Below are positions 10,147-52,258 of a stretch of DNA of 64,000 bases, piece by piece. The stretch's first letter is position 1, and each line of letters begins with the position of its first letter. The translations under genes and the position numbers were made by a program. The DNA lies in NCBI GenBank assembly GCA_043228905.1, contig JBHGNT010000012.1, positions 6,262,001 through 6,326,000 of the forward strand, written 5' to 3'. The notes beneath the pieces are model-generated. The model worked only from the letters and a program-made list of their open reading frames with translations. It did not search any database and was not told where the DNA came from. The DNA comes from Azolla caroliniana (Eukaryota > Plantae > Polypodiophyta).

Positions 10147-10554
10147 AGTATTTATAGATTTGAGAATCACAATATTTAGAAACTCATACTAGTTATGTAA
10201 ATGTGTTAGTCAATCAATCATGGCATTTATTATACTCTATCATAGTGATGAGACTTGAGGATCATGAAGAAATACATCTAATCTCTCCAAAAGTGTGGTT
10301 GTGACAAGGTTGTGGATATTCCTAGAGCTAAATGTGAAACCGTTATACTGAACGGAGACATGCATATCTACACAAAGAGCATAGTTGGTGATGTTAGATG
10401 ATGAAATTACGTTTCTTAGTATAAGACATGACTTCCATTTAATTTCCTTGTGATATCCATTGGTATATTCTCTCTCCTTTTTTCAATGAATTTTCTTTTC
10501 TTTTCTTTATTGTATAAGAACAGTTTTGGGCCTTCCTTCTTTGTTTTTCTCACA

Positions 10555-11580
10555 TACGTTGACTTGATCAATGATTAGGTAGTTGTAATCTTCTTATATG
10601 TGTACAAGGGACGAATATCGCTATATTTTAATTTGATCAATGGTCATGTAGTTGTAATCTTCTTACATATTTACGAGGGATGAATATCTATATATTTTAA
10701 CTTGATCAATGGTCATGTTGGTCTAATTTTCTTACACGTTTAGGAAGGACAAATACTTGTACTTTTTAACTTGATGAGGGGTCATGTAGATGTAATCTCT
10801 TACATGTGTACAAGGGAGGAATATCTATATATTTTAAATCGATCAATTATCATTTAGTTGTAATATTCTTACATTTCTATGAGGAAAAAATATCAATATA
10901 TTTTTACTTCATCAATGGTCATGTAGTTGTAATTTTCTTACACGTTTACAAGAAACTAAATATGCTAACTTGATCAGTGATCATGTAGATGTAATCTCAT
11001 ACATGTGTACAAGGGACGAATATCCATACGTTTTAACTTGATCAATGATCCTTTAGTTGTAATATTCTTACATTTCTATGAGGAACAAATATTAATATAT
11101 TTTTACTTGATCAATGGGCATGTAGTTGTAATTTTCTTACACATTTACAACAAACTATATATGTTGATTTGATCAGTGATCATGTAGATGTAATCTCTTA
11201 CATGTGTACAAGGGACGAATATCTATATAGTTTAACTTGAACATTTTATCTATAAGGAACATATATTAATATATTTTTACTTGATCAATGGTCATGTAGT
11301 TGTGATTTTCTTACACGTTTACAAGAAACTATATATGCTAACTTGATCAATAATCATGTAGATGTAATCTCTTACATGTGTCCAAGGGACGAATATCTAT
11401 ATATTTTAACTTGAACAATGATCATTTAGTTGAAATATTCTTACATTTCTATGAGGAATAAATATTAATATATTTTTACTTGGGTCAATGGTCATGTAGT
11501 TGTAATTTTCTTGTACCTTTACAAGAAACTATATATGCTAACTTGATCACTGATCATGTAGATGCACTCTTCTTACACAC
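10555..11580. repeat. Tandem satellite, ~62-69-bp monomer, about 16 copies, with ~200-bp higher-order period
   Basis: ACTTGATCAATGGTCATGTAGTTGTAAT..CTTACA recurs every 62-69 bp. Three monomer variants cycle (about 10770, 10970, 11170, 11345, 11545). Confidence 0.9.
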
Positions 11581-22600: not shown

Positions 22601-24591
22601 GCTCGTGCTCCCTCTTACCGGCTTCGCACTTGCCGTTTGCGAAATGTGTTGCCGTCTCTTCCAACTTACCAATGTTCGATTCTGTGTCGGCCTTTACTTG
22701 TTAAAATGGGTTTCTTGGCATTGGTCCATTGTATGGTTTGAGTCGGAACCCATTGACCCATTTACCCAGAACCTCGCCAGCGAGTGTCCCTAACTAGTAG
22801 GAACCGTTGAACTCACGCGTGATCCAGTATGACCCGGTCCACCGAAACCGTAGCTTCCCCGGCATCTTACCCATCTGGGTTTGGAATACTAGTACCGGCT
22901 TACCGATTCCAAACCTCTTTTCATCCCCTTTTCGGTGACGATCCACGAACGCTTTCCTTCGCCACTGCTCAAGTTCTAGGTGCATGATGATGGATAGCCG
23001 GTGTTCTTCTAATTCGCATAGCGTGGCTAACTGGATCGCTTCCGATTCCTTCTCATTTAGGCATTCCCGAATCTGTATTCGTAAACTCGGTACCTGGAAC
23101 TCGACCGGCATCACTGCCTCCAATCCGAATGCTAGGCGAAACGGTGTTGTGCGGATACTTGTCTTATATGCCGGTCGGTAGGCCTAGAGTGCATAGTGTA
23201 GCTTTGTATCCCAATCCGTTCGGTTCTCATTGACAATTTTTCGAAGGATGTTCTGCAGTGTTTTATTTGTTGACTCGGCTAATCTGTTGGCTTGCGGATA
23301 ATAGGGAGTGCTCTGTTTGTGCACCACCGCATAGAATGTCGTCAAACTTTCCACTACTTGCCCTAAGAAATGCCCACCTTGGTCACTTATTAGCTCTATC
23401 AGACATCCATACCGGCACCAGATGTATTCATATAAAAAATTTGTCGTGGATGTTGCGGTGTTGTCCCATAGTGCTTTGGCTTCCACGCACTTTCTGCAAT
23501 AATCCATAGCGACAATCACGTACCGATTGTTGGTTCTCATTGCTGGTGGTTTGAATGGACCGACAAAATCCAGCCCCCATTTTTGAAATGGTTCTAACGG
23601 TAGCACGGGCTAGTGAGGCATCCTGGCTTGTTCGGTTGGTTGGCCCATTCGCTGACAGAGGTCGCATTCTTTAGTGTACCGAACTGCATCCTTCAATGTT
23701 GTTGGCCACCATAGTCCACTCAGCCATATTTTCCTTGGCGTGGCATCTCCGGCATAATGTCCTCCAACCACTCCGCAATGTGCTTCGCGCAATATTATGT
23801 CCTTTTCGTCGTTGCGCACTGCACGCCGCCATATGCCATCTGCGTCTTTGTGGTACAGTGTGTCCTGTAATAGGCAGTGCTCAGAAATTGGTGCATGTTA
23901 GTGAGCCACTTGTCTTCCTCTACGACCGTACCATATGTGGTCATTTCTGCTGTGACTCTAAACAGCTCTGCGTCCGGGAACTCGTCTAGGACACCATCAT
24001 CGGTTTCGCCGGAATCCAACCGGCTCAAATAGTCTGCTATCGCATGTTGTATGCCGGGTCGATGGAATATCTCGAACTCGAATTCTTGTAATAGTAACGT
24101 CCACCGGGCTAGTTTACCAATGAGTGATGCTTTGGACACCAAATAGAGGAGCGTCGAATGATCTACGTGAAAGGAAAATTGTTATTCGCTTAGCCGGACA
24201 AGGCCTAACACAAGGTGTCACGGAGACACTTCACCAAAGGGTGATTACGGCATAGGATTAAGATTCAACGATTACACCGACTTACGTAGGTTACACAATT
24301 AGATTGCTTTGGTTAATTACACGCGTAAGATATAACAGTGATTACAGAACGGAAATCAAGACAGAAGTATAAACATCAGAATCTCTATTAATTATCCGCT
24401 GTCATTACAATAGGGTCCGGGCCTTTAAATAGGTTTCCGGCCCGTAGTACAAAACGGTGTCTCTCGCACCTATTCGGGATCCGTCCGGATCTGGAACGGC
24501 ATACCGTTTCCAGTCCGTCCGTCCACACTATGCTCATTTACAACCATCTAATTAATTCCGTATTTTGGACTCCTTGCCGGCCGGTAACACA

Positions 24592-24629
24592 TGGCACGCC
24601 CGTGGGACAGTACCTTGTACGTCGAACCC
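24592..24629 (+). promoter_or_regulatory. Oppositely oriented tRNA-Arg(UCU)-complementary site at the PPT position of element A
   Basis: TGGCACGCCCGTGGGAC-[AGTACCTTGTACG]-TCGAACCC begins 2 nt inside the 3' LTR edge. No purine tract abuts the LTR on the coding strand. Confidence 0.75.
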
Positions 24630-24928
24630 TTCTCGGCCCCTTCATTGTTCACCCAAATTGTCCAAAATACTTGGTTCGAGAATTTCCGCTTGTTCTTTCG
24701 GTTGTGGTTGTTGCGGCTGTGCTTGCTGCTGCTGCTGTGATTGCGGTTGTGACTGAGGTTGCTCCGACTGCTCTGCTTGCTGCTGCTGCTCCATTTGTCT
24801 CGCTGACTCCGGCTGCTCCGTTTGTCTCTCTGGCTCCGGCAACTCCGTTTGACTGCTTCCGGTCCGGTCTCCTTCCAGTAACGGTTCCTCATCACTGAGG
24901 TTGACCGTAACTGGTTCTCGTTCTTTCT

Positions 24929-27900
24929 TGTTGTAAAACAACGCTCCGACCCTCTTCTCCCGCTCGGCCACAACCGAGAAATCACGAATCAATGCAGCAG
25001 AAAATAGGAAACTCAGAGAAAGACACGATAACACAGGGATTAACGTGGAAAACCCTAAACGGGAAAAACCACGGGAGTACTAGACTCCAAATCAACACTA
25101 TACAGAGAAGTATACAATGGCGAGCTGCAAGGCGACGACCTTGAGCTCACTGTTCTCGCCACAGGCGGCGGTAATACACAGAGGCAACGACCTCCTCGTT
25201 TCTCTCTCTCTCTCTCTCTCTCTCTCGGCTGCTCTCACTTCGCTCCCTCTGAGTGAAAACAGAAAATGAGCAGCAACAGTAAAACTGTTTGCCCTAAGTC
25301 ATATTTATACACATATGACTTTCGGGCTATTTACAAATATAGCCTCAAAGGGCTCTTGGCAAACATATTCACAAATATGTCCCCGCATCCGGATCTCTCT
25401 CTCCGGGTACATTCGTCATCCGGCTCCGCAGCCGGGGTCTACATCATCCGGCTCCGTAACCGGGTCTTCGTCATCCGGCTCCGTAACCGGGTGCTATTCA
25501 TCATCCGGTTCCGTAACCGTAACCGGGCTTGCCGTCATTCATATCCGGACATCCCATCCGGAGGGACCGTAAATCCCAACAAACTCCCCCTTCACTTCAG
25601 CATGGGATGTATCTCCAATCCGATCCTCTTCCGGCATGCTTCTAGCTTGTCGGGTGTGAGCACTTTGGTCAGCATATCTGACCCGTTCTCGTCCGTGTGG
25701 ATCTTCGTCAACACGAACTCCTGGTCTTCTATCCTTTCCCGGATCCAGTGATATCTTCGCTGGATGTGCTTCGTCCGGGAGTGATAGGCCGCGTTCTTCG
25801 CAAGGTGGATGGCACTCTGACTGTCGCAGTAGAGTCGGTACTCCTCCTGCCGGATACCAAGCTCTCTAATGAAGTCCTTCATCCATATTATTTCCTTGCC
25901 GGCTTCAACAGCCGCCATGTACTCCGCCTCCGTGGTTGACAGCGCAACCGTCTTCTGCAGCCTCGACTGCCACGAAACGGCTCCCCCTGCATATGTCATC
26001 ACATACCCTGATGTGGACCGGCTGGTATCTGCATCAGCCGACATATCCGAATCGGTAAATCCATCGAGTTCGGGCTTACCGGAGCCGAATCGGAGGCACA
26101 CGTTTGCCGTGCCCTTCAGGTATCGGAGCATCCACTTGACCGCGTTCCAGTGCTCCTTACCGGGATTTCTCATGTACCGGCTCACCACTCCGACTGCATA
26201 TCCGATGTCCGGTCTCGTACACACCATGGCGTACATCAAGCTCCCGACAGCTGAGGCATACGGCACTTTCATCATATCCTCCTTTTCAGCCTTTGTCTTG
26301 GGGCTTTGCTTGCTGGACAGCTTGCAGTTTGCCGGGAGGGTCGATCCGACCGGTCTTGCCTCCGACATGTTGAACCGGTGAAGCACCTTCGTCACGTACT
26401 TCTCCTGTGACAGCCACAACTGCTTCTTCTTCCGGTCCCGGATGATGTGCATCCCTAGTATTTGCCTCGCCGGACCCAGGTCTTTCATTGAGAAGGTTCG
26501 GTGAAGAGCCTTCTTCAGCATCTGTATCTTGACCTGGTCCCGTCCGACGATCAACATATCGTCCACGTACAGGAGGAGTATTAGAGAGTCTCCTCCGTCG
26601 AACTTCTTCACAAACACGCAGTGGTCGGACTGCGTTTTGTGGTACCCTTCATCGGTCATGAAGGAGTCAAACTTCCGGTACCATTGCCGGGGAGCCTGCT
26701 TCAGACCGTAGAGGCTCTTCTTCAACCGGCATACCAGGTGCTCCTTTCCTTTCTTCTCGAATCCTTCCGGTTGCTGCATGTAGATCTCTTCTTCGAGGTC
26801 ACCGTGAAGGAATGCCGTCTTCACGTCCATCTGTTCTACCTCGAGGTCCATGCTTGCCGCTATGCTCAGCACCGTCCGGATGGAGGTCATCTTCACTACC
26901 GGGGCAAATATCTCGTCGAAGTCGACGCCCTTCTTCTGCTGAAACCCCTTCACCACGATCCTGGCTTTGTATCTCGGGGGGTTTCCGGCATCTCCCGGTT
27001 TCAGCTTGAACACCCACTTGTTTCGAAGTGCCCGCTTTCCTTTTGGCAACTCCACAAGTTTATATGTGTGGTTCTCATGCAGGGAATCCATCTCCTCCTG
27101 CATGGCACTTAACCACCTGCGGCTATGGGTGTCAAGCTTCGCTTCTTCAAAGCTCTCCGGCTCCCCCTCGTCGGTTAGCAGCACGTGCTCTGGTTCCGGA
27201 AATCTCCGGGGGGCCCTCCTCTCTCTTAGAGGATATCTCCGTTCCGGAGCTTCGGTAACCGGTTCTTCCGATTCTTCTTCATCCGAATCCATTTCGGGAT
27301 CGGGGCCGGTTCCGGTATCATATTTATCTTCTTCGGCCGGTTCTGTTTCTTCACCGTCTTCGGCCGGATCCTCGAGTGCTAACCGGTCTCTTGCCGGTCG
27401 GGACTGCTCCTTGTAGAGTTGATCCTCACCGGTCGACTTGGAGCTCTTCATCTTCTTCTCCGACTCCCAGTCGGCGAGTGTCTTGTCCTCCATGAAGATG
27501 ATATCTCGACTCCTGAATATCTTCTTGTCGACCGGGTCCCATACTCGGTAGCCGAACTCGTCGTTGCCGTAACCGAGGAATATGCATGGCCGGGTCTTTG
27601 GATCTAGCTTTCCTCTCCGGTCCTTTGCCACATGCACATATGCGAGACACCCGAACACCTTCAGATGCCGGTAGGACACTTCCCTACCGGTCCACACTCT
27701 CTGCGGCGTGTCTCCGTCCAAAGGTACTGAGGGTGATCTGTTAATCACGTATGTCGCTGTCGACATTGCCTCAGCCCAAAACCCCTTGGGTAATTTCGCA
27801 TGCGCCAGCATACTCCGAACCCTCTCCATTATGGTCCGGTTCATCCTCTCGGCCAGCCCGTTCAGTTCCGGCGTCTTCGGCACTGTAAACTCGAGCCGGA

Positions 27901-30349
27901 TTCCCTTCGAGCGACAGTACTCCTGGAACTGCCCCCGGTATTCCCCTCCGTTATCCGCTCGTACCGCTTTCAGCTTCTTGCCGGATTCCCTTTCCACTCT
28001 CGCGTGGAGTTCTTTGAAGACGGACAATACTTGGTCCTTTGTCTTCAGCGGTGCCGTCCACAGCTTCCGGCTGTGATCATCTATGAATGTTACGAAGTAC
28101 TGGGCTCCGCCATGTGACTTCGTTTCTACTTGACACACGTCAGTATGCACCAGCTCCAATGGTGCAATACGTCTCGTCGGTGGCCTTGAGTGGAAGGAGG
28201 CCCGGTTTTGCTTACCGGCCAGGCAATCGGTGCACTTCTCCAGGTGCACATGCTTCACTGGAATGAGGTTGTCATCTGCAAGCCTCTTCATCCCCTTCTC
28301 GCTCATGTGGCACAGTCTCTTGTGCCATAGCTCACCGGCAGTGTCAGCTGCCACGTTCAGCTCCTCCGGACATAGCCGGGAATTCATCAGGTACAGTGTG
28401 TTGACTTTCCGGGCCCGAGCCACTATCAGACTCCCCTTGCTGAACTTCATGACACCGTTCCGGATGCTACCCGTGTAGCCTTCATCGTCTAGCCTCCCAG
28501 CCGAAATCAGGTTCAATCGAACCTCCGGAACGTGTCGAACATCCTTCAGCAGCATTTTGCATCCGGTTGATGTCATCAGCCACACGTCTCCTATGCCGGC
28601 AATCCGGCACGTACCTTCATTTCCCATCCGGACACAGCCATGCTCACCGGCTGTGTAGGATGAGAAGTATTTCTTCTCCGGGGTCAGGTGGAACGACGCT
28701 CCGGAATCGACCACCCAGGTCATCTCTTCTCCGGCAAGGTTCAGCTCCCTCTCTTCGGTAATGAGCATTATCTCTTCTTCACTTGCCGCGAGTGCTGTCG
28801 TTCCTTTCCGGTCCTGCCCTCGCCGATCCGGACCTCTCCGGTCCGTGGCTCCCCGGTATGCTCCGTTTCGCTCCGGTGACTTCTTCGAATCGGTGTCGTC
28901 GGCTCCGTTGTCCTTTCGGTAATGCCGACAATTCTTCCGGAAGTGCCCCGGCTTCCCACAGTGGAAGCATGTAGGCCTTCCTCTTGATTGCGACCGGGTC
29001 CCCGACTTCTCCCGTCTTTGCGGACTCCGGTTCCATTGTCTTCCCCGATCCGATTCGGTAAGCAGCGCCTTCGTGTCGGAGGCCGGTTCTTTATCTCTCC
29101 GACGCGCTTCTTCGTTCAAAATACTTGTCTTCACCGTTTGTAAGGACAAGTTATCTTCGGTGCAGGAGGTGCTGAGAGTCACCACCAAGTTCTCCCAGCT
29201 GTCCGGCAATGTGCACATCAGGATGATGGCTTGCATTGCATCCTCCAACGGGAACTTGATCGCCGCAAGCTGGTTCACGAATCCCATGAACGTGCTTACG
29301 TGTTCCACCATACTCTCGCCGTCTCGGTACTTGAGATTCACTATCTTTCTCATCAGGGAGGTCCGGTTCAACGCATTCTTCCTCTCGTAGAGGCCCGACA
29401 GCTTCTTCCACATCTCGTATGCGTTGGTGTCGTTCGCCACATGTTGTAAGACGCTTACATCGACATATTGCCGGATCGTCGCTACGGCTTTCCGGTTCAG
29501 AAGCCTCCATTCCGTCTCAAGTACCCCCTTCGGTATTTCCGACCTGTCAATCGGTTCGTACAGGTCCCGAACAATCAGAAGATCCTCCATCTTGATCTTC
29601 CAGTCGGCGTAATTTTGTGCATTCAGCACCATCATCCCCGGCTGCCCGCTGCCGCCGCCTTCCATTTTCTGCGTTACCGTCGCTCTGATACCACTTTGTT
29701 GTAAAACAAAGCTCCGACCCTCTTCTCCCGCTCGGCCACAACCGAGAAATCACGAATCAATGCAGCAGAAAATAGGAAACTCAGAGAAAGACACGATAAC
29801 ACAGGGATTAACGTGGAAAACCCTAAACGGGAAAAACCACGGGAGTACTAGACTCCAAATCAACACTATACAGAGAAGTATACAATGGCGAGCTGCAAGG
29901 CGACGACCTTGAGCTCACTGTTCTCGCCACAGGCGGCGGTAATACACAGAGGCAACGACCTCCTCGTTTCTCTCTCTCTCTCTCTCTCTCTCTCGGCTGC
30001 TCTCACTTCGCTCCCTCTGAGTGAAAACAGAAAATGAGCAGCAACAGTAAAACTGTTTGCCCTAAGTCATATTTATACACATATGACTTTCGGGCTATTT
30101 ACAAATATAGCCTCAAAGGGCTCTTGGCAAACATATTCACAAATATGTCCCCGCATCCGGATCTCTCTCTCCGGGTACATTCGTCATCCGGCTCCGCAGC
30201 CGGGGTCTACATCATCCGGCTCCGTAACCGGGTCTTCGTCATCCGGCTCCGTAACCGGGTGCTATTCATCATCCGGTTCCGTAACCGTAACCGGGCTTGC
30301 CGTCATTCATATCCGGACATCCCATCCGGAGGGACCGTAAATCCCAACA
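24929..30349 (-). mobile_element. Intact, very young Ty1/Copia (Tnt1/Tork-like)
   Basis: 653-bp LTRs 24929-25581 and 29697-30349 (one difference seen), TSD TTTCT, tRNA-iMet PBS TGGTATCAGAGC 29682-29693, PPT GAAGGGGGAG at about 25584-25593. Confidence 0.97.
25592..29665 (-). CDS. gag-pol: Copia gag-pol polyprotein, 1357 aa (gag, CCHC, PR, IN, RT, RNase H)
   Basis: CFHCGKPGHFRKNC, WVVDSGAS, LWHKRLCH..CTDC, ADNGGEY, NGLAERMNRT, MDVKTAFLHG, LYVDD, FTDSD, RTKHI. Confidence 0.97.
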   Translation of the reverse strand: MEGGGSGQPGMMVLNAQNYADWKIKMEDLLIVRDLYEPIDRSEIPKGVLETEWRLLNRKAVATIRQYVDVSVLQHVANDTNAYEMWKKLSGLYERKNALNRTSLMRKIVNLKYRDGESMVEHVSTFMGFVNQLAAIKFPLEDAMQAIILMCTLPDSWENLVVTLSTSCTEDNLSLQTVKTSILNEEARRRDKEPASDTKALLTESDRGRQWNRSPQRREKSGTRSQSRGRPTCFHCGKPGHFRKNCRHYRKDNGADDTDSKKSPERNGAYRGATDRRGPDRRGQDRKGTTALAASEEEIMLITEERELNLAGEEMTWVVDSGASFHLTPEKKYFSSYTAGEHGCVRMGNEGTCRIAGIGDVWLMTSTGCKMLLKDVRHVPEVRLNLISAGRLDDEGYTGSIRNGVMKFSKGSLIVARARKVNTLYLMNSRLCPEELNVAADTAGELWHKRLCHMSEKGMKRLADDNLIPVKHVHLEKCTDCLAGKQNRASFHSRPPTRRIAPLELVHTDVCQVETKSHGGAQYFVTFIDDHSRKLWTAPLKTKDQVLSVFKELHARVERESGKKLKAVRADNGGEYRGQFQEYCRSKGIRLEFTVPKTPELNGLAERMNRTIMERVRSMLAHAKLPKGFWAEAMSTATYVINRSPSVPLDGDTPQRVWTGREVSYRHLKVFGCLAYVHVAKDRRGKLDPKTRPCIFLGYGNDEFGYRVWDPVDKKIFRSRDIIFMEDKTLADWESEKKMKSSKSTGEDQLYKEQSRPARDRLALEDPAEDGEETEPAEEDKYDTGTGPDPEMDSDEEESEEPVTEAPERRYPLRERRAPRRFPEPEHVLLTDEGEPESFEEAKLDTHSRRWLSAMQEEMDSLHENHTYKLVELPKGKRALRNKWVFKLKPGDAGNPPRYKARIVVKGFQQKKGVDFDEIFAPVVKMTSIRTVLSIAASMDLEVEQMDVKTAFLHGDLEEEIYMQQPEGFEKKGKEHLVCRLKKSLYGLKQAPRQWYRKFDSFMTDEGYHKTQSDHCVFVKKFDGGDSLILLLYVDDMLIVGRDQVKIQMLKKALHRTFSMKDLGPARQILGMHIIRDRKKKQLWLSQEKYVTKVLHRFNMSEARPVGSTLPANCKLSSKQSPKTKAEKEDMMKVPYASAVGSLMYAMVCTRPDIGYAVGVVSRYMRNPGKEHWNAVKWMLRYLKGTANVCLRFGSGKPELDGFTDSDMSADADTSRSTSGYVMTYAGGAVSWQSRLQKTVALSTTEAEYMAAVEAGKEIIWMKDFIRELGIRQEEYRLYCDSQSAIHLAKNAAYHSRTKHIQRRYHWIRERIEDQEFVLTKIHTDENGSDMLTKVLTPDKLEACRKRIGLEIHPMLK

Positions 30350-33139
30350 TTTCTCTCCCCGGATCCGGGACCTCTCGTAGCTTTCAAACTGAATCTGCGC
30401 CTCCAGCCTGTCGTCGTCCAGCTGAGCTACAAGTTGCCGGACTTGCTCTAGTTGGTCCTCTGCCAAGGCTTGAAAGTCTTCGGCAAGCTCATCCCTTATG
30501 CCGGTGAAGTCTTCGGAAGTCAGCATATAGCAATCATCTCCCTCCTTCCGCCGGTTCTCTACGTCAGCCCGGAGCAATTGGAGTTCCGCCGCGTTTGTGG
30601 CCCACTTGGTCCACCATTTGACGGAGCCGTTGTCAATCAAGCTCTTGGTCTGGTTCAACCAGGCCCGCATTATATCCTGGATGCGACTTGCTCCCATCTG
30701 TGCTCTGCTTTCCACCACTTGTCGCTCCTCCTTCAACTGCTTGATGAGGTTTGCCGTATCCTCCGCCTGCTCTCGGTAGCGCGTCAGCTGCCCTTGATAT
30801 GTCGTTTGCAGCCTCTGCAGTACCTCCGCCGCTCTTTCTTTTTCCGCCTGCTGTTGCCTGAGGAGCTCTGTCCGAACCTTCTCCGCCTCTTCCAACCGTC
30901 TTCTGTTTTCCGCTTGTTCCTTGGCGAATGCGGTTGCGGTCCGATCAACTGCTTGCCGGAGCTCATCCATCCGTTCCTTGTGCTCCGTTTGCAACCGTTT
31001 ATACTCCCGGTGCAAGTTCTCAAATTCCTCTGTTTTTAGTTTGAGCTTGCCGTTGATCTGGCGATGGTTCCGGTCCTCCCGGTCCTTTACCTGCCGGAGT
31101 TCCTCTTTCAGGCGCTCTACTTCTGTTTCGGCGTTCCTCCGGAGTTTCTCCTTCTCTTGCAGCATTTTCTCTTTCTCCTCCTTGAGCCGGTCGTACGCTT
31201 GGTGGCCTTTCCGTAAGCTCTCCTCGGCCCGGCGTAGATTCTCAGCAGTCTTTTTGAGTTCTGCCTCCGCTGCCGTTTTCAGTTCTCTTTCGCGGCTCCT
31301 CAGCGCTTCTTGGGCAGCAAGCTCATCCTTTAAATCCGCAAGCTCTTGGGCTTGTGCCGCATTTTTCTCCGGAACGGTTTCCGTTGCCGGGGTCTGATTG
31401 CTATGTACAGGTTGATCCTCTTTATTCTGTACATTGCCCGGAGTCACCGGTGCTTGGACTTGTGTTTCCCTTGTGACCCTGTCCAAGTCTTGTTCAAGGC
31501 TCCGGATTCTGGACCGGGCCGTCTCTAGATCTACGGTTGTGACGAGCAACCGTTCCTGGTGCGCTCTCTCTTCCGCCTCTATATACTCGACCACTCCGGC
31601 GATTTGCTCGCCTACCCATCGTAGCCACATGCTACTGGTGCCTTGTTGCTGTCCTGGTCGGGTCGGCTCATTCACCGTGGAATTGTCTGGCCTGATTGCC
31701 TGCATGTGCCGTTCTGGTTCTACTCCTTGGCCGCCGTGTGCTCTGGCTGGGCTCGCCGGCTGTTGAGGTCCGGTTCTCGCCGTCTCCGGAGCCGTTGGAC
31801 TGACTTCTTCTATAGAAGTCGACAAGACCGGTTCCCTACGCACCGGTTCCGGTTCTTCCCTTGTGGTTTGCTCAGGTTGAGTTGGGGGCGTCTCTGCCTC
31901 TCGCGGGTACGACCGCTCCCCTCCTGTCTCGGCGGTCCTACTTCTTGGCCGTCGTTGGAGGTGCTCTTCCGGCTCCTCCGTTTCCTCGTCCTGTGCCACG
32001 GCATGTTTCTGTGCCGTCAAGGGTTCCGGTTCCTTCTGTCCTGGTCTCCGTAAGGTTATCTTGACGGGTCGGACCGGTGACACCTCCTCCGGTTCTGGGA
32101 CCCGTTTCTTCCCTTTCGCCGCCTTCGACGCCAGCAGCTGCTGTCGTTTGGACGCCGGCTTCGAGGTGCTTCCTTCCGATACTCTTGGCCGCTTCTTTGG
32201 CTGGGCGGTCTCGACCGGCGGCACGAGCAATGTGATCCATTGAGCTACGGCGTGCCACAGCTTCCGGCCCTCCTTGCCGTCCTTCCCTCGTACCATGTCG
32301 ATTGCCATGCACAATCCGTCTGCAATCAGCACCGGCCAGTCCACCTTGACCCCTTCATAGGTGGCTATGATCATCCCTGCCCGATTTTTTGGCATGACAG
32401 GGGGTCGGGGGTACACGTGACCATACTCGTGGAGCACTCGAGCTATCTCCCTGAATAGCGGATCTTCGCCGCCCTGCGTCCGATAGCCTTTGCCAGCAAC
32501 AGAGTACTCACCGAAATATCGGGTGAGTTGCTCCGAGGTTGGGTTATCGATCTGAAAGATTCCTCCCTCCGGAAGGCCTGTTAGCGCGCGGATCGCTTCC
32601 TCGGTGATGACCTCTGTGGCGAGCTCCTTGATGACCCGGTCTGCTTCTCTGTGCGGCGGTGCCTCCATGATGGCCAAGAACCCTTCCAGTCCGTTTTGCC
32701 TGAACCATTTCCTGGCCGCTTCCGACAGCGTTTGTGGTTCCATGTCTGCTTCAAGGTCGAGGGACGATGGCGAGGTAGAGTGGTGATGAGGGTGAGAGCG
32801 AGAGAGAGAGCGTTCTGAGCGCGGGGGTTCTCTGCGTGCAGGTTCGCGTTTGCTCAGCTTCCACTGCCTTGGTGCTTCTGTGCTTCTTGGCTCGCGAAAA
32901 TAGAGGGTCTCCATGCGCTCTGTTTCTTCTTTGTGCGTTTTGGCGCCTTTTTCGAGCATGCACACGTCGTGTACTAATTTAGTATTAAGTGGCGTGGCGT
33001 CTCTTAAATGCCCACTACGTACCTTTTCGCGCCTCGCTTTCACACCCGTTCATACCTCGATTTTTAATGATTTGATTTTTTTTTTTATTTTTTTATTTTT
33101 TTTTTTTTTTTTTTTAATTTTTAATGACGGTGTGTGACC

Positions 33140-36100
33140 TTACACATCCGTAGGTCCCTCCGGACCCTGACCGTTTTCCTTACGGGTTGCCGTGTCTTCC
33201 TTCGTGTTTACTACGGGTTCCCCGTTGTCTTTTTCTTCCGGATCGATCCGTACCGATCCCGGACAGGTTCCTGGTGTAGTGCCGGTGAGCTGCATAAACG
33301 GGTTCTTTGGCATCGGTCCTTTATAGGGCTTTAGTCGAAATCCATTCACCCACTTGCCTAGTACTTCCCCGGCAAGTGTCCCTATCTGATAGGACCCGTT
33401 GTATTCCCGTGTCAGCCAATACGGGCCTGTCCATCTGAACCGGAGTTTACCCGGCATCTTGCCCATCCTCGTTTGGAATACTAGCACCGGCTTTCCGATT
33501 TCGAACATCTTTTCGTTACCTTTCCGGTGACGGTCAACGAACGCTTTCTGTCGTCGTTGCTCCAGTTCCATGTGGAGGATGCTGGCCAGCCGTTGCTCCT
33601 CCAGTTCGCATAGTGCTGCTAGCCGTATTTCCTCCGACTTCTTTTCATTCAGCCGTTCCCGTAGTTGGATCCGTAAGCTTGGTACCTGAAACTCGACCGG
33701 CATGACCGCTTCTAAGCCGAATGCTAACCGGAACGGCGTTGTCCGGATGCTCGTTTTGTATGCCGTTCTGTACGCCCATAGCGCACTATGGAGCTTTGTG
33801 TCCCAGTCCGTCCGGTTTTCATTGACAATTTTGCGGAGAATGTTCTGCAGCGTTTTGTTGGTGGACTCTGCTAACCCGTTCGCCTGTGGGTAATACGGTG
33901 TGCTTCTTTTATGGACCACGGCATAGAACGTTGTTAAACTTTCCACTACCTGGCCGAGGAAATGCCCTCCTTGGTCGCTGATCAGTTCAATCGGACATCC
34001 ATATCGGCACCAAATGTTCTCGTACAGGAATTTTGCTGTAGATGACGCGGTGTTGTCTCTCAGGGCCTTAGCTTCCACCCATTTCGTGCAATAATCCGTT
34101 GCCACGATGACATAACGATTACCCGTTCTCATTGCCGGTGGCTTGAACGGTCCGACAAAATCCAATCCCCACTTCTGGAATGGCTCTAGTGGAAGTACCG
34201 GTTGGTGTGGCATCCGTGCTTGCTCCGTTGGCTGGCCCATTCGTTGGCATAGGTCACATTCCTTAGCATACCTGACGGCATCTTTTAGCGTCGTGGGCCA
34301 CCATAAGCCGCTCTGCCATACCTTTCTTGCCGTCGCTTCCCCGGCATAGTGTCCTCCGGCAACCCCACAGTGTGCTTCCCGTAAGATTACTTCTTTCTCG
34401 TCACTACGGACTGCCCGTCTCCATATTCCATCTGCTCCTTTGTGGTAGAGAGTGTCCCGTAACAGACAGAAATTGCGGCTCTGCACCGCCAGTCGTTTCC
34501 TCTCGTCCCGGTTCATTTCCTCCGGTGGCAGGCCCGTGCTTAGGAACTGGTGCATGTTTGTCAGCCATTTATCTTCTGATGCCACCGTGTCGTCCGCTGC
34601 CGTTTCCGGGGTGATACGGAATAACTCCGCGTCCGGGAATTCATCCGCTACTCCGTCGCCTGGTTCTCCGGACTCTAACCGGCTCAGGTAGTCTGCTACG
34701 GCATGCTGGATACCGGGACGGTGGAAAATCTCGAATTCGAACTCCTGCAACAGCAAGGTCCAACGAGCCAACTTACCGGTTAGCGACGCCTTGGACACTA
34801 AGTACAGCAGCGCCGAGTGATCCACATGAAAGGAGAACTTCCTTCCCAATAGGTAGTGCCGAAACTTTGTGACACTGTAGATCATGCCGAGAGCCTCCCG
34901 TTCTGTCGTTGAATAGTTCTTTTCCGCTTGGGACAGCTTCCGGCTGGCGTAATATACCGGCCGGTACCATTTGGGCTCCGTAAGCTGCATTAAGGCGCTG
35001 CCAATAGCGATGTCGGACGCGTCCACGAACACATGAAATTCCTTGCTCCAATCCGGAGGCTGCACGACGGGTGCTTGCGATAAAAGTACCTTCAGGGCAT
35101 TGTATGCCTTATCCTCCGTATCCGTCCATTGGAACGGTGTCCGATGTACCGCGGTGTGTAATGGTGTAGCCAAATCAGCCAAGTGACGGAGCATCCGGCT
35201 GTGCCACCGGATCTGTCCTAAGAATCGGCTTAGTGCTTTGGCTGTTTTCGGTGCCGGTGCCCCTAGTATGGCGTTTACTTTGTCCGGGTCGACCGCAATG
35301 CCCTCCTTACTTACAATGTGTCCCAGCAATATTCCACTTGAAACCCCGAAGATGCATTTTGCTGGATTTAAGCTTAGCCGGTATAACCTACACTTTTCAA
35401 GGCATAACCGGAGGTGCTGCAAATGGTCTTTTCCCCGGCTATAGACTGCAAAATCATCCAGGAAAACTTGCATGAAGGCAGGAATGTAATCGCCGAAGAT
35501 CTCCATGATGATTCGCTGGAAAGTTGCTGGTGCCGTTTTTAGGCCGAACATCATCACTTCAGCCACAAACACCCCCCATTCGGTGACGAACGCTGTCTTC
35601 TCCTGGTCTTCCGGGTGCATCCGGATTTGATTGTACCCGCTGAACCCGTCTAGAAAGCTATAAACTTCATGACCGGCGACGGCATCCAGTACTCCATCCG
35701 TGAACGGAAGAGGGAATGCATCCGTAATTGTGGCGGCATTTAGTTTCCTGTAATCTACACACACACGGATTTTACCGTTCTTCTTGGGGACGACGACGAT
35801 GGGGCTCAGCCACGTCGCTTTCTTTACCGGCCGGATGAAGCCCACTCTTAGGAGTTTGTCGATTTCCTCTTTTACCTTGGCGGCGTAGTTGGGGTTCATT
35901 CGGTATCGTCTTTGCGCCACTGGTTTCGCGTCCTTGCCTAAGTGGATCTGATGCTGATATAATTGAGGGTCCAGCCCTCGCATGTCCTCGTATGACCAGG
36001 CGAATACGTCGCGAAACTCCGTGAGAAGTTTGATCATTGCCGCTTTATCTTCCGGCTTCATTTCTTTGGCGATGTGAACCGGCTTTGATTCGTCCTTGCT

Positions 36101-39004
36101 TCCTAGGTTCACTTCGTCGAGCTGGGATGCTTTTACCCGTTGGGAAACGGCCATTTCCCGTTCCAACGCTTCCTGTGCTTGCCGTAATTCCCGAATCGCA
36201 TCTTTGTCTGGTTCGGCTTCGGTGTCGTCCCGCTGCGGCAAGTATGCGGCTACGGCTTCAGCTATGTCGATCTCGAAGAGTGGTACGATCTTCGGATGTT
36301 CCTCCAAGTACTGGGCTTCTTCGTCGTCCGCCAATCCTTCAAGCATGTTCACACATTCCGCGTACAGCGGTGTGCATTCCTTACCGTTGCTCGTCCGTGG
36401 TTGTGTCGGAACCCGGACCTTGGCTTTTCCGCGCCGGAAGGTGATCATGTTTTTCCGCCAATTTTGCTTGATGTGTGCAGTTTTCAACCATGGTCTGCCC
36501 AGCAACAGTGGGTACGCGCCTTGCGCCTGTAGCTGCAGCACTACAGCCGAGATGTGAAATGTGTGGCCTCCTATGGTGACTTCCAATTTCCGTATTAAGC
36601 CCGTCGGCCGTACCGAGCTCGTATCCGCCATCCGTAGCCAGAACGGGCATGGCTCCCATTCATGTATACCCAAGGCATCACACGTACGGAGGCTTATTAC
36701 GTTCACCCCGGAACCTCCATCGATTACTGTGCCGGGAAGTTCGTGCCCTTTGACAATAGTTGTAATCACCGGACTGCTAGTGTCCACTACCGTCGGTCCC
36801 TCTTCCGGGTTCGAGAAGAGGACTGGTGCTGGTGGGGCTATGCCGTCTGTCATGCCCGTTTTTAGCCCTTCCGTAAATCGCGGCACGAGCTGCAAGAGTC
36901 TTCCTAACGGCAACGTGATCTGACATTCTTGCAGTGCTTGCCATGTCTCGTTTTCTGGGTGGCTACCGCCGGCACTCCCTATGGTATTTGCCTTTTGCCG
37001 TTCCGCGTCCGCGACGTTCTTTTCATTGGCTTCCTTCACCCATTCCGTCGCCTGCCTTCGTATGGCCTCTTGTGTTTCCCACTCTTTGGCCATGCCTTTC
37101 GACCGTGTGGTTACTTGCTGTACATCCGTCACTTCCGGAACCACCATATTAACTGCTGGTCGTTTCTCGTAGCTCTTTACCGGGCACTGGTTACTGTAGT
37201 GGCCTTCCTGCCTGCAGTAGTAGCAGTACTCTTTACGGGTATCGCTGGATTCAGCATTGCTGGTAGCCGGAGTTGGTCCCGTAGCGAGTGGTGCGTTCGG
37301 TGCCGGTTGGCTCCTTGGGATTCCATGTTCCGGGTCCCTAGGGTGACCACCTTTCTTGAAGTTTCGTTTCTTATTATTCTTATGTTTATTTCGGTAGTCC
37401 GGCCGTGGTGGATCGTAACATCGGCCGTAGTCCTCCTGGTGCCTTCGGTAACCAGGGGAATGGTCTCTATCGTATTGCTCATGTCGCCTGTTGGGCTCCC
37501 GATAACGGTCCGATCGCTCATACCGGTCGTAGTTATCACGCCGATTCCCGTACCGGCCATCATTCTCTTGCCTGTCTCCGTACCGGACATCTTGTGCCGG
37601 TGGGTACCGGTTCCCTCTTTGCCAACGATCGTCATCTTCGTCTCGGCTGCTTCTTGGCTCGATCCGTCGGACGGGTGGTGCTTGTCGATTTAACAGGTTG
37701 TACTCGCACCGGTCCGTTGTATGACTCTTGGATTGACAAATCACACACTGAGTGCGCATGGTGCACTCTACTGCCGAGTGTCCGGCATTCAAGCAGATTG
37801 TGCATTGAATTGCCTGCCGGAACCGGAGATCTTCCTCGGTGGGTAATGCCCGTTGCAGTGTTCCCAGCGTAAGCCATGAGCTTGTCTTTTCCATTTCTCT
37901 GACCCGGTCAATGACCTGGTCGATGGTGCATCCTCGAAAGTCGATTACCGTACACACCGTGCGTAACGGTTCCCGGAGTGCGTTTAAAAATATCGTCCGT
38001 AATTCCTCCTCCGGGGGTGCACGGGCAAGCTGGCTATGCATTCGTTGGAAACGGATGACGAATTGGGGAATGCTTTCCCCTGCCTCCTGCCGGATCGTAT
38101 AAAACAGCCCCACCATTGTCGTCTGGTCAACCTCCTTGTGGAAAAAATGCAAGAATTTTGCTTTTAATTCTGCAAATGTTGTGATGGTCGCCGGGTCCTG
38201 CGATCGCCGCCATCGTGTCGCTGGTCCCTCCAACGTGACTCCGAATTCCGCTATCTTCGAGCGTTCTTCTTCCTCCGGTGTCATTCGCTGGGACGTGTGA
38301 TTTGCTTCCCATGTCTGCTCGAAGTCATCCACATGTGCTTCCGCATCCGGATCATCGCGGTACTTTGAGTATTGGAACGGCATGTCGTCGTCCAGTATTA
38401 AGCAGCGGTTTAGTGGCGTTTGTTGATATCTTTCCGGTTCTTTCTCCGGTTTCACTTCCGGTTCTTTTGCCGGTCCTTTTTCCGGTTCTTTTTCCGGCTC
38501 TTCTTCCGGTACCTTTGCCGGGAAGTTCGTTGGTGTTGGTGGCTTTGCTTCTTCCACTTCCGGTGTTGGTGGGTTGACGGCTTCCGTTTGCGGTTCCGGA
38601 TAGCCCTGGTTGCGCGGTTCCGGTTCTGGAGTCGGCACGGTATCCGATCCGTCGTCTTCCGGGCCGCCGGGGGTATCGTTGCTGCTCCGGTAGTTCGTGT
38701 GCACGCTGTATCCCCCTTCGGAATCTGATTCGTAGGCTGAAAAGGCTTCTGCCTCGTTTTCTCCGCTTGCCAGCGCCTCCAGGAGTCGTTCGGTTTCCCG
38801 GAGACTACTTAGACTGCTGCCGTCGTCCTGGTCGCGAGTTTGCCGTAACCGGAGAGATTCCTCCGCGACTCTCCGGATCTCGTTGGAGAACGAACGATCC
38901 GAGCGAATTTCCTGCGCTGCTTGCTGGAAAGTCTCACGCCGTCTTTGCCGTTCGGCGAGGCGTCGAGCTCGGTCTGTACCCAAGTCGTGCGTTGGTCTAG
39001 TCAT
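33140..39004 (-). CDS. gag-pol: Gypsy gag-pol polyprotein, 1954 aa (gag, 3 zinc knuckles, PR, RT, RNase H, IN)
   Basis: Three CCHC motifs, PR VIDGGSGVNVI, RT FLDGFSGYNQI...MMFGL...FLDD, RH VDASDIAIG...ADYLSR, IN H..GH..CDLC, SDQGGHF, NGLAES, WTGPY. No chromodomain. Confidence 0.96.
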   Translation of the reverse strand: MTRPTHDLGTDRARRLAERQRRRETFQQAAQEIRSDRSFSNEIRRVAEESLRLRQTRDQDDGSSLSSLRETERLLEALASGENEAEAFSAYESDSEGGYSVHTNYRSSNDTPGGPEDDGSDTVPTPEPEPRNQGYPEPQTEAVNPPTPEVEEAKPPTPTNFPAKVPEEEPEKEPEKGPAKEPEVKPEKEPERYQQTPLNRCLILDDDMPFQYSKYRDDPDAEAHVDDFEQTWEANHTSQRMTPEEEERSKIAEFGVTLEGPATRWRRSQDPATITTFAELKAKFLHFFHKEVDQTTMVGLFYTIRQEAGESIPQFVIRFQRMHSQLARAPPEEELRTIFLNALREPLRTVCTVIDFRGCTIDQVIDRVREMEKTSSWLTLGTLQRALPTEEDLRFRQAIQCTICLNAGHSAVECTMRTQCVICQSKSHTTDRCEYNLLNRQAPPVRRIEPRSSRDEDDDRWQRGNRYPPAQDVRYGDRQENDGRYGNRRDNYDRYERSDRYREPNRRHEQYDRDHSPGYRRHQEDYGRCYDPPRPDYRNKHKNNKKRNFKKGGHPRDPEHGIPRSQPAPNAPLATGPTPATSNAESSDTRKEYCYYCRQEGHYSNQCPVKSYEKRPAVNMVVPEVTDVQQVTTRSKGMAKEWETQEAIRRQATEWVKEANEKNVADAERQKANTIGSAGGSHPENETWQALQECQITLPLGRLLQLVPRFTEGLKTGMTDGIAPPAPVLFSNPEEGPTVVDTSSPVITTIVKGHELPGTVIDGGSGVNVISLRTCDALGIHEWEPCPFWLRMADTSSVRPTGLIRKLEVTIGGHTFHISAVVLQLQAQGAYPLLLGRPWLKTAHIKQNWRKNMITFRRGKAKVRVPTQPRTSNGKECTPLYAECVNMLEGLADDEEAQYLEEHPKIVPLFEIDIAEAVAAYLPQRDDTEAEPDKDAIRELRQAQEALEREMAVSQRVKASQLDEVNLGSKDESKPVHIAKEMKPEDKAAMIKLLTEFRDVFAWSYEDMRGLDPQLYQHQIHLGKDAKPVAQRRYRMNPNYAAKVKEEIDKLLRVGFIRPVKKATWLSPIVVVPKKNGKIRVCVDYRKLNAATITDAFPLPFTDGVLDAVAGHEVYSFLDGFSGYNQIRMHPEDQEKTAFVTEWGVFVAEVMMFGLKTAPATFQRIIMEIFGDYIPAFMQVFLDDFAVYSRGKDHLQHLRLCLEKCRLYRLSLNPAKCIFGVSSGILLGHIVSKEGIAVDPDKVNAILGAPAPKTAKALSRFLGQIRWHSRMLRHLADLATPLHTAVHRTPFQWTDTEDKAYNALKVLLSQAPVVQPPDWSKEFHVFVDASDIAIGSALMQLTEPKWYRPVYYASRKLSQAEKNYSTTEREALGMIYSVTKFRHYLLGRKFSFHVDHSALLYLVSKASLTGKLARWTLLLQEFEFEIFHRPGIQHAVADYLSRLESGEPGDGVADEFPDAELFRITPETAADDTVASEDKWLTNMHQFLSTGLPPEEMNRDERKRLAVQSRNFCLLRDTLYHKGADGIWRRAVRSDEKEVILREAHCGVAGGHYAGEATARKVWQSGLWWPTTLKDAVRYAKECDLCQRMGQPTEQARMPHQPVLPLEPFQKWGLDFVGPFKPPAMRTGNRYVIVATDYCTKWVEAKALRDNTASSTAKFLYENIWCRYGCPIELISDQGGHFLGQVVESLTTFYAVVHKRSTPYYPQANGLAESTNKTLQNILRKIVNENRTDWDTKLHSALWAYRTAYKTSIRTTPFRLAFGLEAVMPVEFQVPSLRIQLRERLNEKKSEEIRLAALCELEEQRLASILHMELEQRRQKAFVDRHRKGNEKMFEIGKPVLVFQTRMGKMPGKLRFRWTGPYWLTREYNGSYQIGTLAGEVLGKWVNGFRLKPYKGPMPKNPFMQLTGTTPGTCPGSVRIDPEEKDNGEPVVNTKEDTATRKENGQGPEGPTDV

Positions 39005-39038
39005 CCATTACCGTCGTTCGCTGCGAGGAAGCAGGAAT

Positions 39039-39049
39039 CGTGGTCGCCA
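39039..39049 (-). promoter_or_regulatory. Minus-strand primer-binding site of element A (tRNA-Arg(UCG)-like, 10-11 nt)
   Basis: TGGCGACCACG lies 6 nt after the 5' LTR and is conserved in C. It matches the recalled plant tRNA-Arg 3' end GTGGTCG-CCA. Confidence 0.7.
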
Positions 39050-39478
39050 AAACTGTGTTATTCGCTTAGCCGGACAAGGCCTAACACAAGGTGTCACGGA
39101 GACACTTCACCAAAGGGTGATTACGGCATAGGATTAAGATTCAACGATTACACCGACTTACGTAGGTTACACAATTAGATTGCTTTGGTTAATTACACGC
39201 GTAAGATATAACAGTGATTACAGAACGGAAATCAAGACAGAAGTATAAACATCAGAATCTCTATTAATTATCCGCTGTCATTACAATAGGGTCCGGGCCT
39301 TTAAATAGGTTTCCGGCCCGTAGTACAAAACGGTGTCTCTCGCACCTATTCGGGATCCGTCCGGATCTGGAACGGCATACCGTTTCCAGTCCGTCCGTCC
39401 ACACTATGCTCATTTACAACCATCTAATTAATTCCGTATTTTGGACTCCTTGCCGGCCGGTAACACATGCCAAAATAG

Positions 39479-39746
39479 TGTTGATGGTTTTAGGGTTAGG
39501 GTTAATGATTATGGTGATAAAGATAGGAATAGGGTTAGGGTTTGTTAATAATACGAATATGGAAATGATTAGCATTGCGAGATTGATGATGACATTGATA
39601 GTGATGAAGATGGAAACAATGTGATGGCGAGATTGATAAGCATTATGGGGTTGAGAGCATGATTACGATGTGCATTGAGAAGCATTGTGGGGTGGGGGGT
39701 GGTGCCTAGAATGGCTCCACCCCCCTCCCAAGGGGTTCAACGTTAT

Positions 39747-39782
<36 letters not shown>

Positions 39783-41570: not shown

Positions 41571-41606
<36 letters not shown>

Positions 41607-41624
41607 GAGAGAGAGAACTATTGC
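39479..41624 (-). mobile_element. Element B: non-autonomous (TRIM/LARD-like) LTR element with two opposed tRNA-Arg sites and a truncated 5' LTR
   Basis: LTR 39479-40029 and a partial copy 41303-41624 are identical over 322 bp by eye. The 1.27-kb internal region is non-coding. TGGCACGCCC lies on minus at 41287-41296 and TGGCACGCCTGTGGGA on plus at 40035-40050. The LTR terminus GGTAACA is shared with A and C. Confidence 0.85.
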
Positions 41625-51795: not shown

Positions 51796-52258
51796 TCCAC
51801 CTCTGGCCAAAATTCGGATTCGCTTGTAGAAGGGATTTTGCTTCCCGAAGGCTGCTTAGGCTGCTTCCTTCGTCCGGGTAGTCGTTTTGTTGTAAACGAA
51901 GTGACTCCTTCGCCACTCTCCAGATCTCCTTGGAAAATGAGCGATCCGTTCTGATTTCTTTTGCCGCTTGCTGGAAAGCCTCTCGCTTCCTCAGCTGTTT
52001 AGCAAGTCTCCTTGCTCACTCCGTAACCGGGTCGTTCGTTGGTCTAGTCATCCATTCCCGTCGTTGTTCGCTGCGATTGTGAAGGAATCGTGGTCGCCAA
52101 AAACTGTGTTATTCCTTAGGGCCGGACAATGGCCTAACACAGGGTGTCTACAGAAGACACTTCACCAAAGGGGTGCTACGGCGAGATAACTTAAGACTCA
52201 ATGATTAATCAGACTTTAATTGGTTACTTAGCAATATGGCATTAAACTTGATACACGT

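Follow-up and report, generated by a model that had tools for sequence, protein, structure and literature searches.

Retroviral plus strands start from a polypurine tract (PPT) that is set off by 2 nt from the integrated LTR, and integrase trims those 2 nt. PPT priming of the plus strand is given as a general feature in reviews of reverse transcription (PMC3185511, PMC5371799), and in a survey of plant LTR retrotransposons the PPT comes up simply as one of their general features (PMC6317226). The site described here precedes the 3′ LTR of a Ty3/Gypsy element of Azolla caroliniana and shares with the PPTs of HIV-1, Ty3, and Ty1 (PMC3185511, PMC5371799) a position just before U3 and the same 2-nt offset to the integrated TG; as with a PPT, the 3′ end of the primer would set the left end of the cDNA. 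Unlike a PPT, it is neither purine-rich nor element-specific, being a copy of the 3′ part of a host tRNA that ends in CCA. On the reading that we favor, a host tRNA annealed to DNA would be the primer, whereas a PPT is an RNase H-resistant piece of the genome.

The other relevant systems involve tRNA directly. Contacts between an extended primer-binding site (PBS) and the tRNA T arm are familiar from the boxes of Ty1 and the U5–TPsiC pairing of retroviruses, while plant RNA viruses carry 3′-terminal tRNA-like structures that mimic the acceptor/T-arm fold and are aminoacylated. The present site resembles the viral structures in being a tRNA mimic with a CCA end in a replicating RNA, but it lies about 400 nt inside that RNA, with a 410-bp LTR after it, and has no acceptor partner. 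The extended PBS interactions of Ty1 and retroviruses (PMC5371799) have their likeness in the 5′ PBS, hairpin, and GAAC box of the families described below, the difference being that here the module recurs, inverted, at the opposite end. The closest known counterparts are in Ty3 and Drosophila gypsy, which also have a second tRNA-related site near the 3′ end, involving the T arm, in the form of a bipartite or dual 5′–3′ PBS (PMC5371799, PMC1635307). On the genomic RNA of these two elements the 3′ segment complements the tRNA and bridges the two ends for minus-strand initiation, and a PPT is present as well; here, in contrast, the gag-sense RNA has the letters of tRNA-Arg(UCU) itself, the tRNA can be bound by the cDNA alone, the site abuts U3, and there is no PPT. 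The self-priming of Tf1, the half-tRNA of copia, and the anticodon-stem primer of Ty5 likewise reveal how LTR elements vary their priming devices, but all of these serve the minus strand and none substitutes for the PPT (PMC5371799). Our literature searches for a tRNA-like or tRNA-derived site at the PPT position, for PPT-less LTR elements, and for tRNA-primed plus strands, partly swamped by unrelated uses of “PPT”, returned nothing relevant. The site points to a mode of plus-strand priming that was not found described in the literature searched.

Element A and its neighbors

The window is the whole 64,000-nt stretch of A. caroliniana DNA that was analyzed (contig JBHGNT010000012.1, positions 6,262,001 to 6,326,000), and coordinates refer to it. 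Element A, a Ty3/Gypsy LTR retrotransposon with gag-pol on the minus strand, occupies 24180–39467 and has the following parts outside the site itself.

24180–24589, minus strand: 3′ LTR, TGTTACC...AATAACA on the gag strand, 100% identical to 39056–39465
24642–24928, minus strand: final piece of ORF2
24929–30349, minus strand: nested Copia inside ORF2, with target site duplication (TSD) TTTCT, tRNA-iMet PBS, and normal PPT AAGGGGGAG before its 3′ LTR
30350–33043, minus strand (open reading frame 30269–33043): ORF2, without a Pfam match, interrupted by the nested Copia
33140–39004, minus strand: gag-pol ORF of 1954 aa (gag, zinc knuckle, RT, RNase H, integrase)
39016–39049, minus strand: 5′ primer module, comprising PBS TGGCGACCACG (39049→39039), ATTC, hairpin CTGC..GCAG (39034→39021), and CGAAC (39020→39016)
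39056–39467, minus strand: 5′ LTR, the final 2 nt (39466–39467) being an extra TG

Pfam places Retrotrans_gag (residues 256–345), zf-CCHC (593–608), RVT_1 (1072–1230), RT_RNaseH (1318–1422), and rve (1607–1706) on the 1954-aa ORF, so that gag, RT, RNase H, and integrase follow one another as in Ty3/Gypsy polyproteins. Neither the chromodomain of chromoviruses nor the second, archaeal-type RNase H of Tat elements was found in this ORF by the Pfam scan (REXdb classes, PMC6317226), and an exact-protein look-up with gag-pol gave no match. As in other Ty3/Gypsy elements, the two LTRs are direct repeats with TG..CA ends, here 410 bp long and identical, and a tRNA PBS follows the 5′ copy; this is an ordinary short PBS of 11 nt, as an earlier note on this DNA had described it. 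Element A is a young Gypsy-type retrotransposon with more than 100 related copies. The extra TG gives the end of its 5′ LTR an unprocessed look.

Three further elements surround or interrupt it. The nested Copia stands outside the feature and provides a control within the window for the presence of a PPT. Element B, an older relative about 75% identical to A, was the host of the A insertion and is split into four pieces, its 3′ end lying outside the window. Element C (39468–41631) is a non-coding element of 2.2 kb that directly adjoins A and carries the same tRNA-like site with a compensated hairpin.

40035–40074, minus strand: tRNA-like site of element C
41287–41296, minus strand: 5′ PBS of element C, TGGCACGCCC, complementary to tRNA-Arg(UCU)
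52089–52099, minus strand: PBS of element B, TGGCGACCACG

The adjoining pair A and C has no clear TSD of 4–5 bp, and relatives in two other contigs (L124 and L126) have TSDs of 5 bp. A 5-bp match that might be a TSD for A alone, ATTTT, would need an LTR 4 nt longer, which is at odds with the 13 nt that the flank shares with the other LTR copy of element C; A and C are therefore taken to be linked end to end. Read on the gag strand, the junction consists of the 3′ LTR of C, CTATTT, the first 5 nt of the PBS of C (TGGCA), and then TG-TGTTACC of A. At the other side the 5′ LTR of C is shortened by about 224 bp exactly where B sequence begins, B itself showing neither loss nor gain. The arrangement looks like two linear cDNAs captured together with their ends untrimmed, and the junction, a single case with a 2-nt ambiguity (CA), would fit an A plus strand that begins right after CCA. 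Integrase-independent insertion by way of primer sequences is reported for Tf1 (PMC11042837).

The site in front of the 3′ LTR

The stop codon of ORF2 lies 12 nt upstream of the tRNA-like site on the gag strand, and from there the order is GGGTTCGA, a 13-nt insert, GTCCCAC GGGCGTG CCA, TG, and the LTR start TGTTACC. On the plus strand the site covers 24592–24629, the spacer 24590–24591, and 24589 is the last LTR base.

24590–24591, minus strand: 2-nt spacer between CCA and the LTR TG, TG on the gag strand; NG in 93/99 aligned sites among the matches listed
24592–24608, minus strand: copy of tRNA-Arg(UCU) nt 59–76 with encoded CCA, minus one C (65/66); on the plus strand it reads as PBS-like TGGCACGCCCGTGGGAC
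24609–24621, minus strand: 13-nt insert separating tRNA positions 58 and 59 and folding into a hairpin (4-bp stem, 3-nt loop)
24622–24629, minus strand: copy of tRNA nt 51–58, GGGTTCGA (5′ strand of the T stem and T loop)

The reference for this comparison comes from contig L005, where positions 1190–1265 hold a complete retro-copied tRNA with CCA, fossilized as the PBS of a small non-coding relative. ARAGORN calls it tRNA-Arg with anticodon tct, and its nt 49–76 read GTGGG TTCGAGT CCCAC CGGGCGT G CCA, in agreement with the 3′ half of tRNA-Arg(UCU) that the earlier note had given. Against this tRNA the site of element A is nt 51–76, one C short at 65/66, with the hairpin inserted between A58 and G59; that note had likewise described a tRNA copy lacking one base, with its CCA directed into U3, and the CCA does end 2 nt before the LTR TG. 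The family consensus is a little longer, with nt 49–58, the 13-nt insert exactly between A58 and G59, and nt 59–76 without one C of C65–C66. No tRNA gene was called by ARAGORN in the window, and pattern scans of viral contigs matched neither the tRNA-like site nor the tRNA gene. PBSs of 12–14 nt for tRNA-Arg(UCU) occur in ten contigs (L001, L009, L010, L024, L032, L034, L042, L061, L069, and L074), and to judge from these and the L005 fossil this tRNA does exist and these elements make use of it.

A purine tract is missing from the place where one would be sought. The earlier description of the sequence ahead of the 3′ LTR was accurate in this respect: the 17 nt before the spacer read GTCCCACGGGCGTGCCA, and no PPT precedes the 3′ LTR of element A, whereas the nested Copia does have one. 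A purine run abutting U3 is also missing in the 99 aligned sites among the matches listed. The position of the integrated LTR start can be read from 5′ copies: that of L077 begins TGTT while its 3′ copy is preceded by CCA-GG, and upstream of the 5′ copy of element A is unrelated DNA (element C). As the 5′ copies of A and L077 start at TGTT, the integrated LTR starts 2 nt past CCA, and the spacer is expected to be the pair that integrase would trim. The arrangement of CCA, 2 nt, and TG recurs in A, C, L001, L002, L003, and L125, and in the 99 distinct aligned sites among the matches listed.

The 16-mer of the site occurs twice in the window against 0.32 expected; this excess, with the same position in at least about 114 of 120 metagenome contigs listed, indicates that the tRNA-like site is not due to chance. 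In three DNA runs, including one from a second organism, summed k-mer depth over 748 nt has its maximum at 24580–24629, and the k-mers of these runs contain no variant as high as 10% within the site. An acceptor stem formed in the RNA was considered and rejected, as complementarity to a partner upstream of the site does not exceed chance (4.0 observed, 4.1 in shuffles); the 10-nt tail can thus pair in trans.

Conservation and covariation across the family

Metagenome contigs were scanned with a pattern made of the last 15 nt of the site followed by NNTGTT, and at least 120 contigs matched. Among the 120 listed, six were chance-like, and about 114 carried GTGGGTTCGA and a hairpin upstream, in letters outside the pattern; the LTR starts behind the site differ greatly among these. 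From the matches listed 99 distinct sites were aligned, providing the check on site conservation and PPT absence across the family that the earlier note had proposed, and it is from this alignment that the following figures come. The near-invariance of the last 17 nt of the site is partly imposed by the search pattern. Letters of the nt 51–58 part that were not searched for are 71–98% conserved, and T54, C56, and T60 are 89–95% conserved. Position 58 is the most variable of the tRNA-derived positions counted (A64/C20/G8/T7). The boundary between tRNA nt 58 and 59 is the edge of the classical 18-nt PBS, reverse transcriptase halting at m1A58, and the variability at 58 fits what is expected if m1A58 stays unpaired.

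The hairpin has been maintained by compensation. All four stem pairs (4/4) show compensatory changes, and the stem covariation score is 0.209 against 0.091 in shuffles, none of 500 of which reached 0.209, and at most 0.074 with the partners slid. Beyond these four, the hairpin gains a fifth pair (C-G to A-T) and a bulged T that never varies. Column 40, which corresponds to tRNA G59, covaries with the first inserted base, so that this base is held by the cis hairpin rather than by pairing with tRNA, and this counts against the host-tRNA reading. The direction of wobble does not separate the strands: G:U pairs on sense and antisense number 1 and 1 inside the stems and 7 and 6 at the outer pair, and per-position rates in the T arm are similar. 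Three further copies, found without the fixed 17 nt, each show C-to-T at a CpG and are possibly dead.

The 5′ primer module and its mirror image

The 5′ primer module of element A is one example of a design present in every readable family, comprising a PBS of 11–14 nt, a spacer of 2–5 nt, a covarying hairpin with a family-specific stem, and GAAC, complementary to GTTC in the tRNA T loop. On its antisense strand the 3′ site repeats this order as TGGCACGCCC-GTGGGAC, hairpin, and TCGAAC-CC. What is new here, as far as sequence comparison can tell, is this module of PBS, looped-out hairpin, and GAAC, mirrored by the antisense of the 3′ site.

The 5′ PBS comes in at least two types, TGGCGACCACG and TGGCACGCCCGG/TGG, while the 3′ site is constant; the 3′ site therefore has no general role in pairing with the 5′ PBS, its role being tied to tRNA-Arg(UCU) itself. 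The same tRNA, tRNA-Arg(UCU), relates to both ends in C and L001. Unlike in Ty3 and gypsy, where the two segments share one tRNA, A, B, L003, L028, and L095 all have TGGCGACCACG, for a different tRNA, as their 5′ PBS with the 3′ site unchanged (that end of B falling beyond the window). We take the 5′ primer of element A to be “tRNA-Arg-like”. The assignment of TGGCGACCACG PBSs is disputed between Arg and Trp (PMC4724089).

True tRNA-Arg(UCU) 5′ PBSs have C or T, a wobble-type alternative, opposite tRNA G67, and so does the antisense of the 3′ site (32/99 among the matches listed); opposite G69 a change of this type occurs in L001 and L009. On cofolding with the tRNA, the antisense strand gains −21 to −25 kcal/mol and the sense strand −5 to −7, a difference that is expected from the design of the site and is illustrative only. 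The predicted antisense complex is a bipartite duplex in which the extra C is bulged and the hairpin looped out.

Relatives and origin of the site

The nearest relatives by pol are the metagenome contigs L003 (89% identity), L001 (80%), and L002 (64%), all of which have the tRNA-like end, 2 nt, LTR, PBS, and gag in that order. More distant relatives differ in this respect. The tRNA-like ends of L002 and L125 are of other kinds: L002 reads CTCCACCAGGTGTGCCA-AG-TGTT, with an 8-bp hairpin and GTTCGA farther upstream, and L125 (46%) has ...CCCAGATGGTCGCCA-TG-TG. L124, from Riccia sorocarpa (48%), has a normal PPT, AAAAAGGGGA, and the TSD GTTAT, while L126 (52%, TSD ATACA) contains no tRNA-like site. 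Given the PPTs of the Riccia element and of the Copia, the tRNA-like state is derived. On these comparisons the device belongs to a clade, and more than one origin is possible.

How the plus strand may be primed

We consider that host tRNA-Arg(UCU), annealed to the minus-strand cDNA, probably primes the plus strand, though with only modest confidence. On this view the site acts as a tRNA primer-binding module, inverted, that stands in for the PPT. Minus-strand synthesis would copy the site, RNase H would strip the RNA, and the exposed cDNA would display TGGCACGCCC..., a looped-out hairpin, and ...TCGAACCC. Host tRNA-Arg(UCU) would anneal there, as the primer tRNA does at the 5′ module, and extension of its CCA-3′OH into U3 would yield plus-strand strong-stop DNA, after which RNase H would take the tRNA off and integrase would trim 2 nt. 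Priming by a second tRNA had been put forward in the earlier note and is the best-supported explanation, argued from comparison throughout. Because the genomic RNA cannot base-pair with tRNA-Arg(UCU), a second tRNA species would be needed in the particle, a demand that counts against it.

That demand falls away if the primer is made by the element itself. The tRNA-like RNA, a hairpin with a 10-nt tail ending in CCA, would survive RNase H on the cDNA and be extended by reverse transcriptase, which would handle it like the initiation complex of tRNA and PBS, with the hairpin as a ruler positioning the cut after CCA. We regard this as possible but rather unlikely. The anatomy of CCA, 2 nt, and TG is equally compatible with it, packaging of a second tRNA becomes unnecessary, the covarying cis hairpin with its invariant bulged T spans positions 58–60, and the missing C could fix the length of the ruler. 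However, it gives no reason for identity to one host tRNA across families with differing 5′ PBSs, nor does it account for the conservation of the unpaired TTCG letters or for the antisense likeness to the 5′ PBS module, and it requires RNase H to cut at an exact point within a non-purine hybrid, a step for which we found no precedent (PMC3185511, PMC5371799). A role confined to the RNA seems improbable. Here the site would be a tRNA mimic in the genomic RNA, involved in 5′–3′ bridging or cyclization for strand transfer, in packaging, or in translation, while some unrecognized RNase H product primed the plus strand; in Ty3 and Drosophila gypsy tRNA is known to bridge the two genome ends (PMC5371799, PMC1635307), and where the 5′ PBS is of the tRNA-Arg(UCU) type (C, L001, L010, and others) the 3′ tail complements it. 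Bridging of this kind is not general, since A, B, L003, L028, and L095 use TGGCGACCACG, and both the fixed distance of 2 nt from CCA to the LTR and plus-strand priming without any purine tract are left unexplained.

Two further readings can be given very little weight. The earlier note had also raised the possibility that the replicated RNA is antisense to gag-pol, which would make the site an ordinary minus-strand PBS and TGGCGACCACG the odd one; on the plus strand the site does follow directly on an LTR and has the look of a long bipartite PBS. This is very unlikely, as the gag-side PBS with its hairpin and GAAC is kept in relatives 75–89% identical, 35 nt upstream of the gag ATG, and relatives carry a PPT on the gag strand at the position of the present site; either orientation, moreover, leaves one end inverted. 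We find it just as hard to credit that the site is a chance match or a functionless fossil of aberrant reverse transcription, even though read-through tRNA fossils such as that in L005 are known in these elements. At least about 114 contigs share the location before diverse LTRs, with compensated hairpins and conserved unsearched letters, the LTRs of element A are identical, and in three DNA runs the k-mer depth is highest at the site.

Taking both ends of the element together, it is on balance somewhat probable that host tRNAs prime both cDNA strands in this plant Ty3/Gypsy clade, with an inverted tRNA-binding module in place of the PPT.

Implications

For genome annotation, tools that require a PPT will mis-score these elements, and the site is a sharp tag by which the clade can be recognized. 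Because of the missing C and the inserted hairpin, the primer sequence would tell the host tRNA and the element's own RNA apart directly. If tRNA priming of the plus strand is true, it would break the rule that LTR retroelements rely on an RNase H-resistant purine tract from their own RNA, and it would provide a natural system for studying how RT and RNase H choose and remove primers. Host tRNA pools or fragments would also gain a second route for the control of retrotransposons. A large, recently active clade that has traded its PPT for a tRNA-derived site would show that the plus-strand step can be rebuilt.

The 3' tRNA-like site and its surroundings

The copy of the 3' part of tRNA-Arg(UCU) in the Ty3/Gypsy element A and its family lacks one C (tRNA position 65/66; columns 46-47 of A1, the alignment of 3' sites), and this base is present in the true 5' PBSs for tRNA-Arg(UCU). 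The site of a related element on contig L125 (L125:10005-10025) is a copy of a different tRNA end, in which the equivalent base may also be absent, as judged against the Riccia PBS, a single decayed one. The bulged T of the inserted hairpin (A1 column 39, window position 24611), a position outside the search pattern used to collect the sites, is identical in 99 of 99 aligned sites among the matches listed.

Five features are considered here and below:

24642-24927 and 30350-33043: ORF2 of element A, >900 aa, without a Pfam family
24929-30349: nested Copia element, TSD TTTCT, LTRs 99.85% identical
10523-11577: tandem repeat array, units of ~69 and 199-207 bp (repeat families D1 and D2)
39016-39049, minus strand: 5' PBS module of element A, comprising PBS, spacer, hairpin and GAAC
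L005:1190-1265: complete tRNA-Arg(UCU) including CCA, fossilised as the PBS of a ~1-kb non-coding LTR element

The tRNA-like site begins 12 nt beyond the end of ORF2, the last part of which is rich in CAG repeats (24700-24800). ORFs in the related elements of L001, L002 and L003 stop at, or extend through, the corresponding spot. Across the 748 nt covered, summed k-mer depth in three DNA sequencing runs (X1, X3 and X9) is highest at window positions 24580-24629, reaching 2-10 times that of the adjacent LTR and ORF bins. One run with this peak carries the label of a different organism.

Associated elements

The nested Copia, which inserted later than A, encodes an intact polyprotein of 1357 aa; its PBS is for tRNA-iMet and its PPT is normal. 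A relative on L127 (49% pol identity) consists of two 9.49-kb units in tandem (L127:445-18667) that are 99.9% identical to each other, each with a small ORF matching Zn_ribbon_Elf1 upstream of gag.

Element A and the non-coding element C are joined head to tail without a TSD (window 39450-39490 and 41600-41640). Two untrimmed nucleotides are retained by A at the junction, the 3' LTR of C continues 11 nt into C's own spacer and PBS, and the 5' LTR of C is truncated; the host element B has lost nothing. The arrangement has the appearance of two linear cDNAs captured by end joining.

The 5' primer-binding module

The 5' PBS module of A is also found in L001, L003, L010, L024, L028, L032, L034, L069 and L095, where a PBS of 11-14 nt is followed by a short spacer, a hairpin and GAAC. 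The hairpin stem varies from family to family and GAAC is invariant; the latter could pair with the tRNA T-loop. No description of such a module in plant Gypsy elements was found in the literature. The non-coding element of L005 bears the 3' tRNA-like site as well as its full-tRNA PBS, and here the whole primer tRNA was copied by RT read-through.
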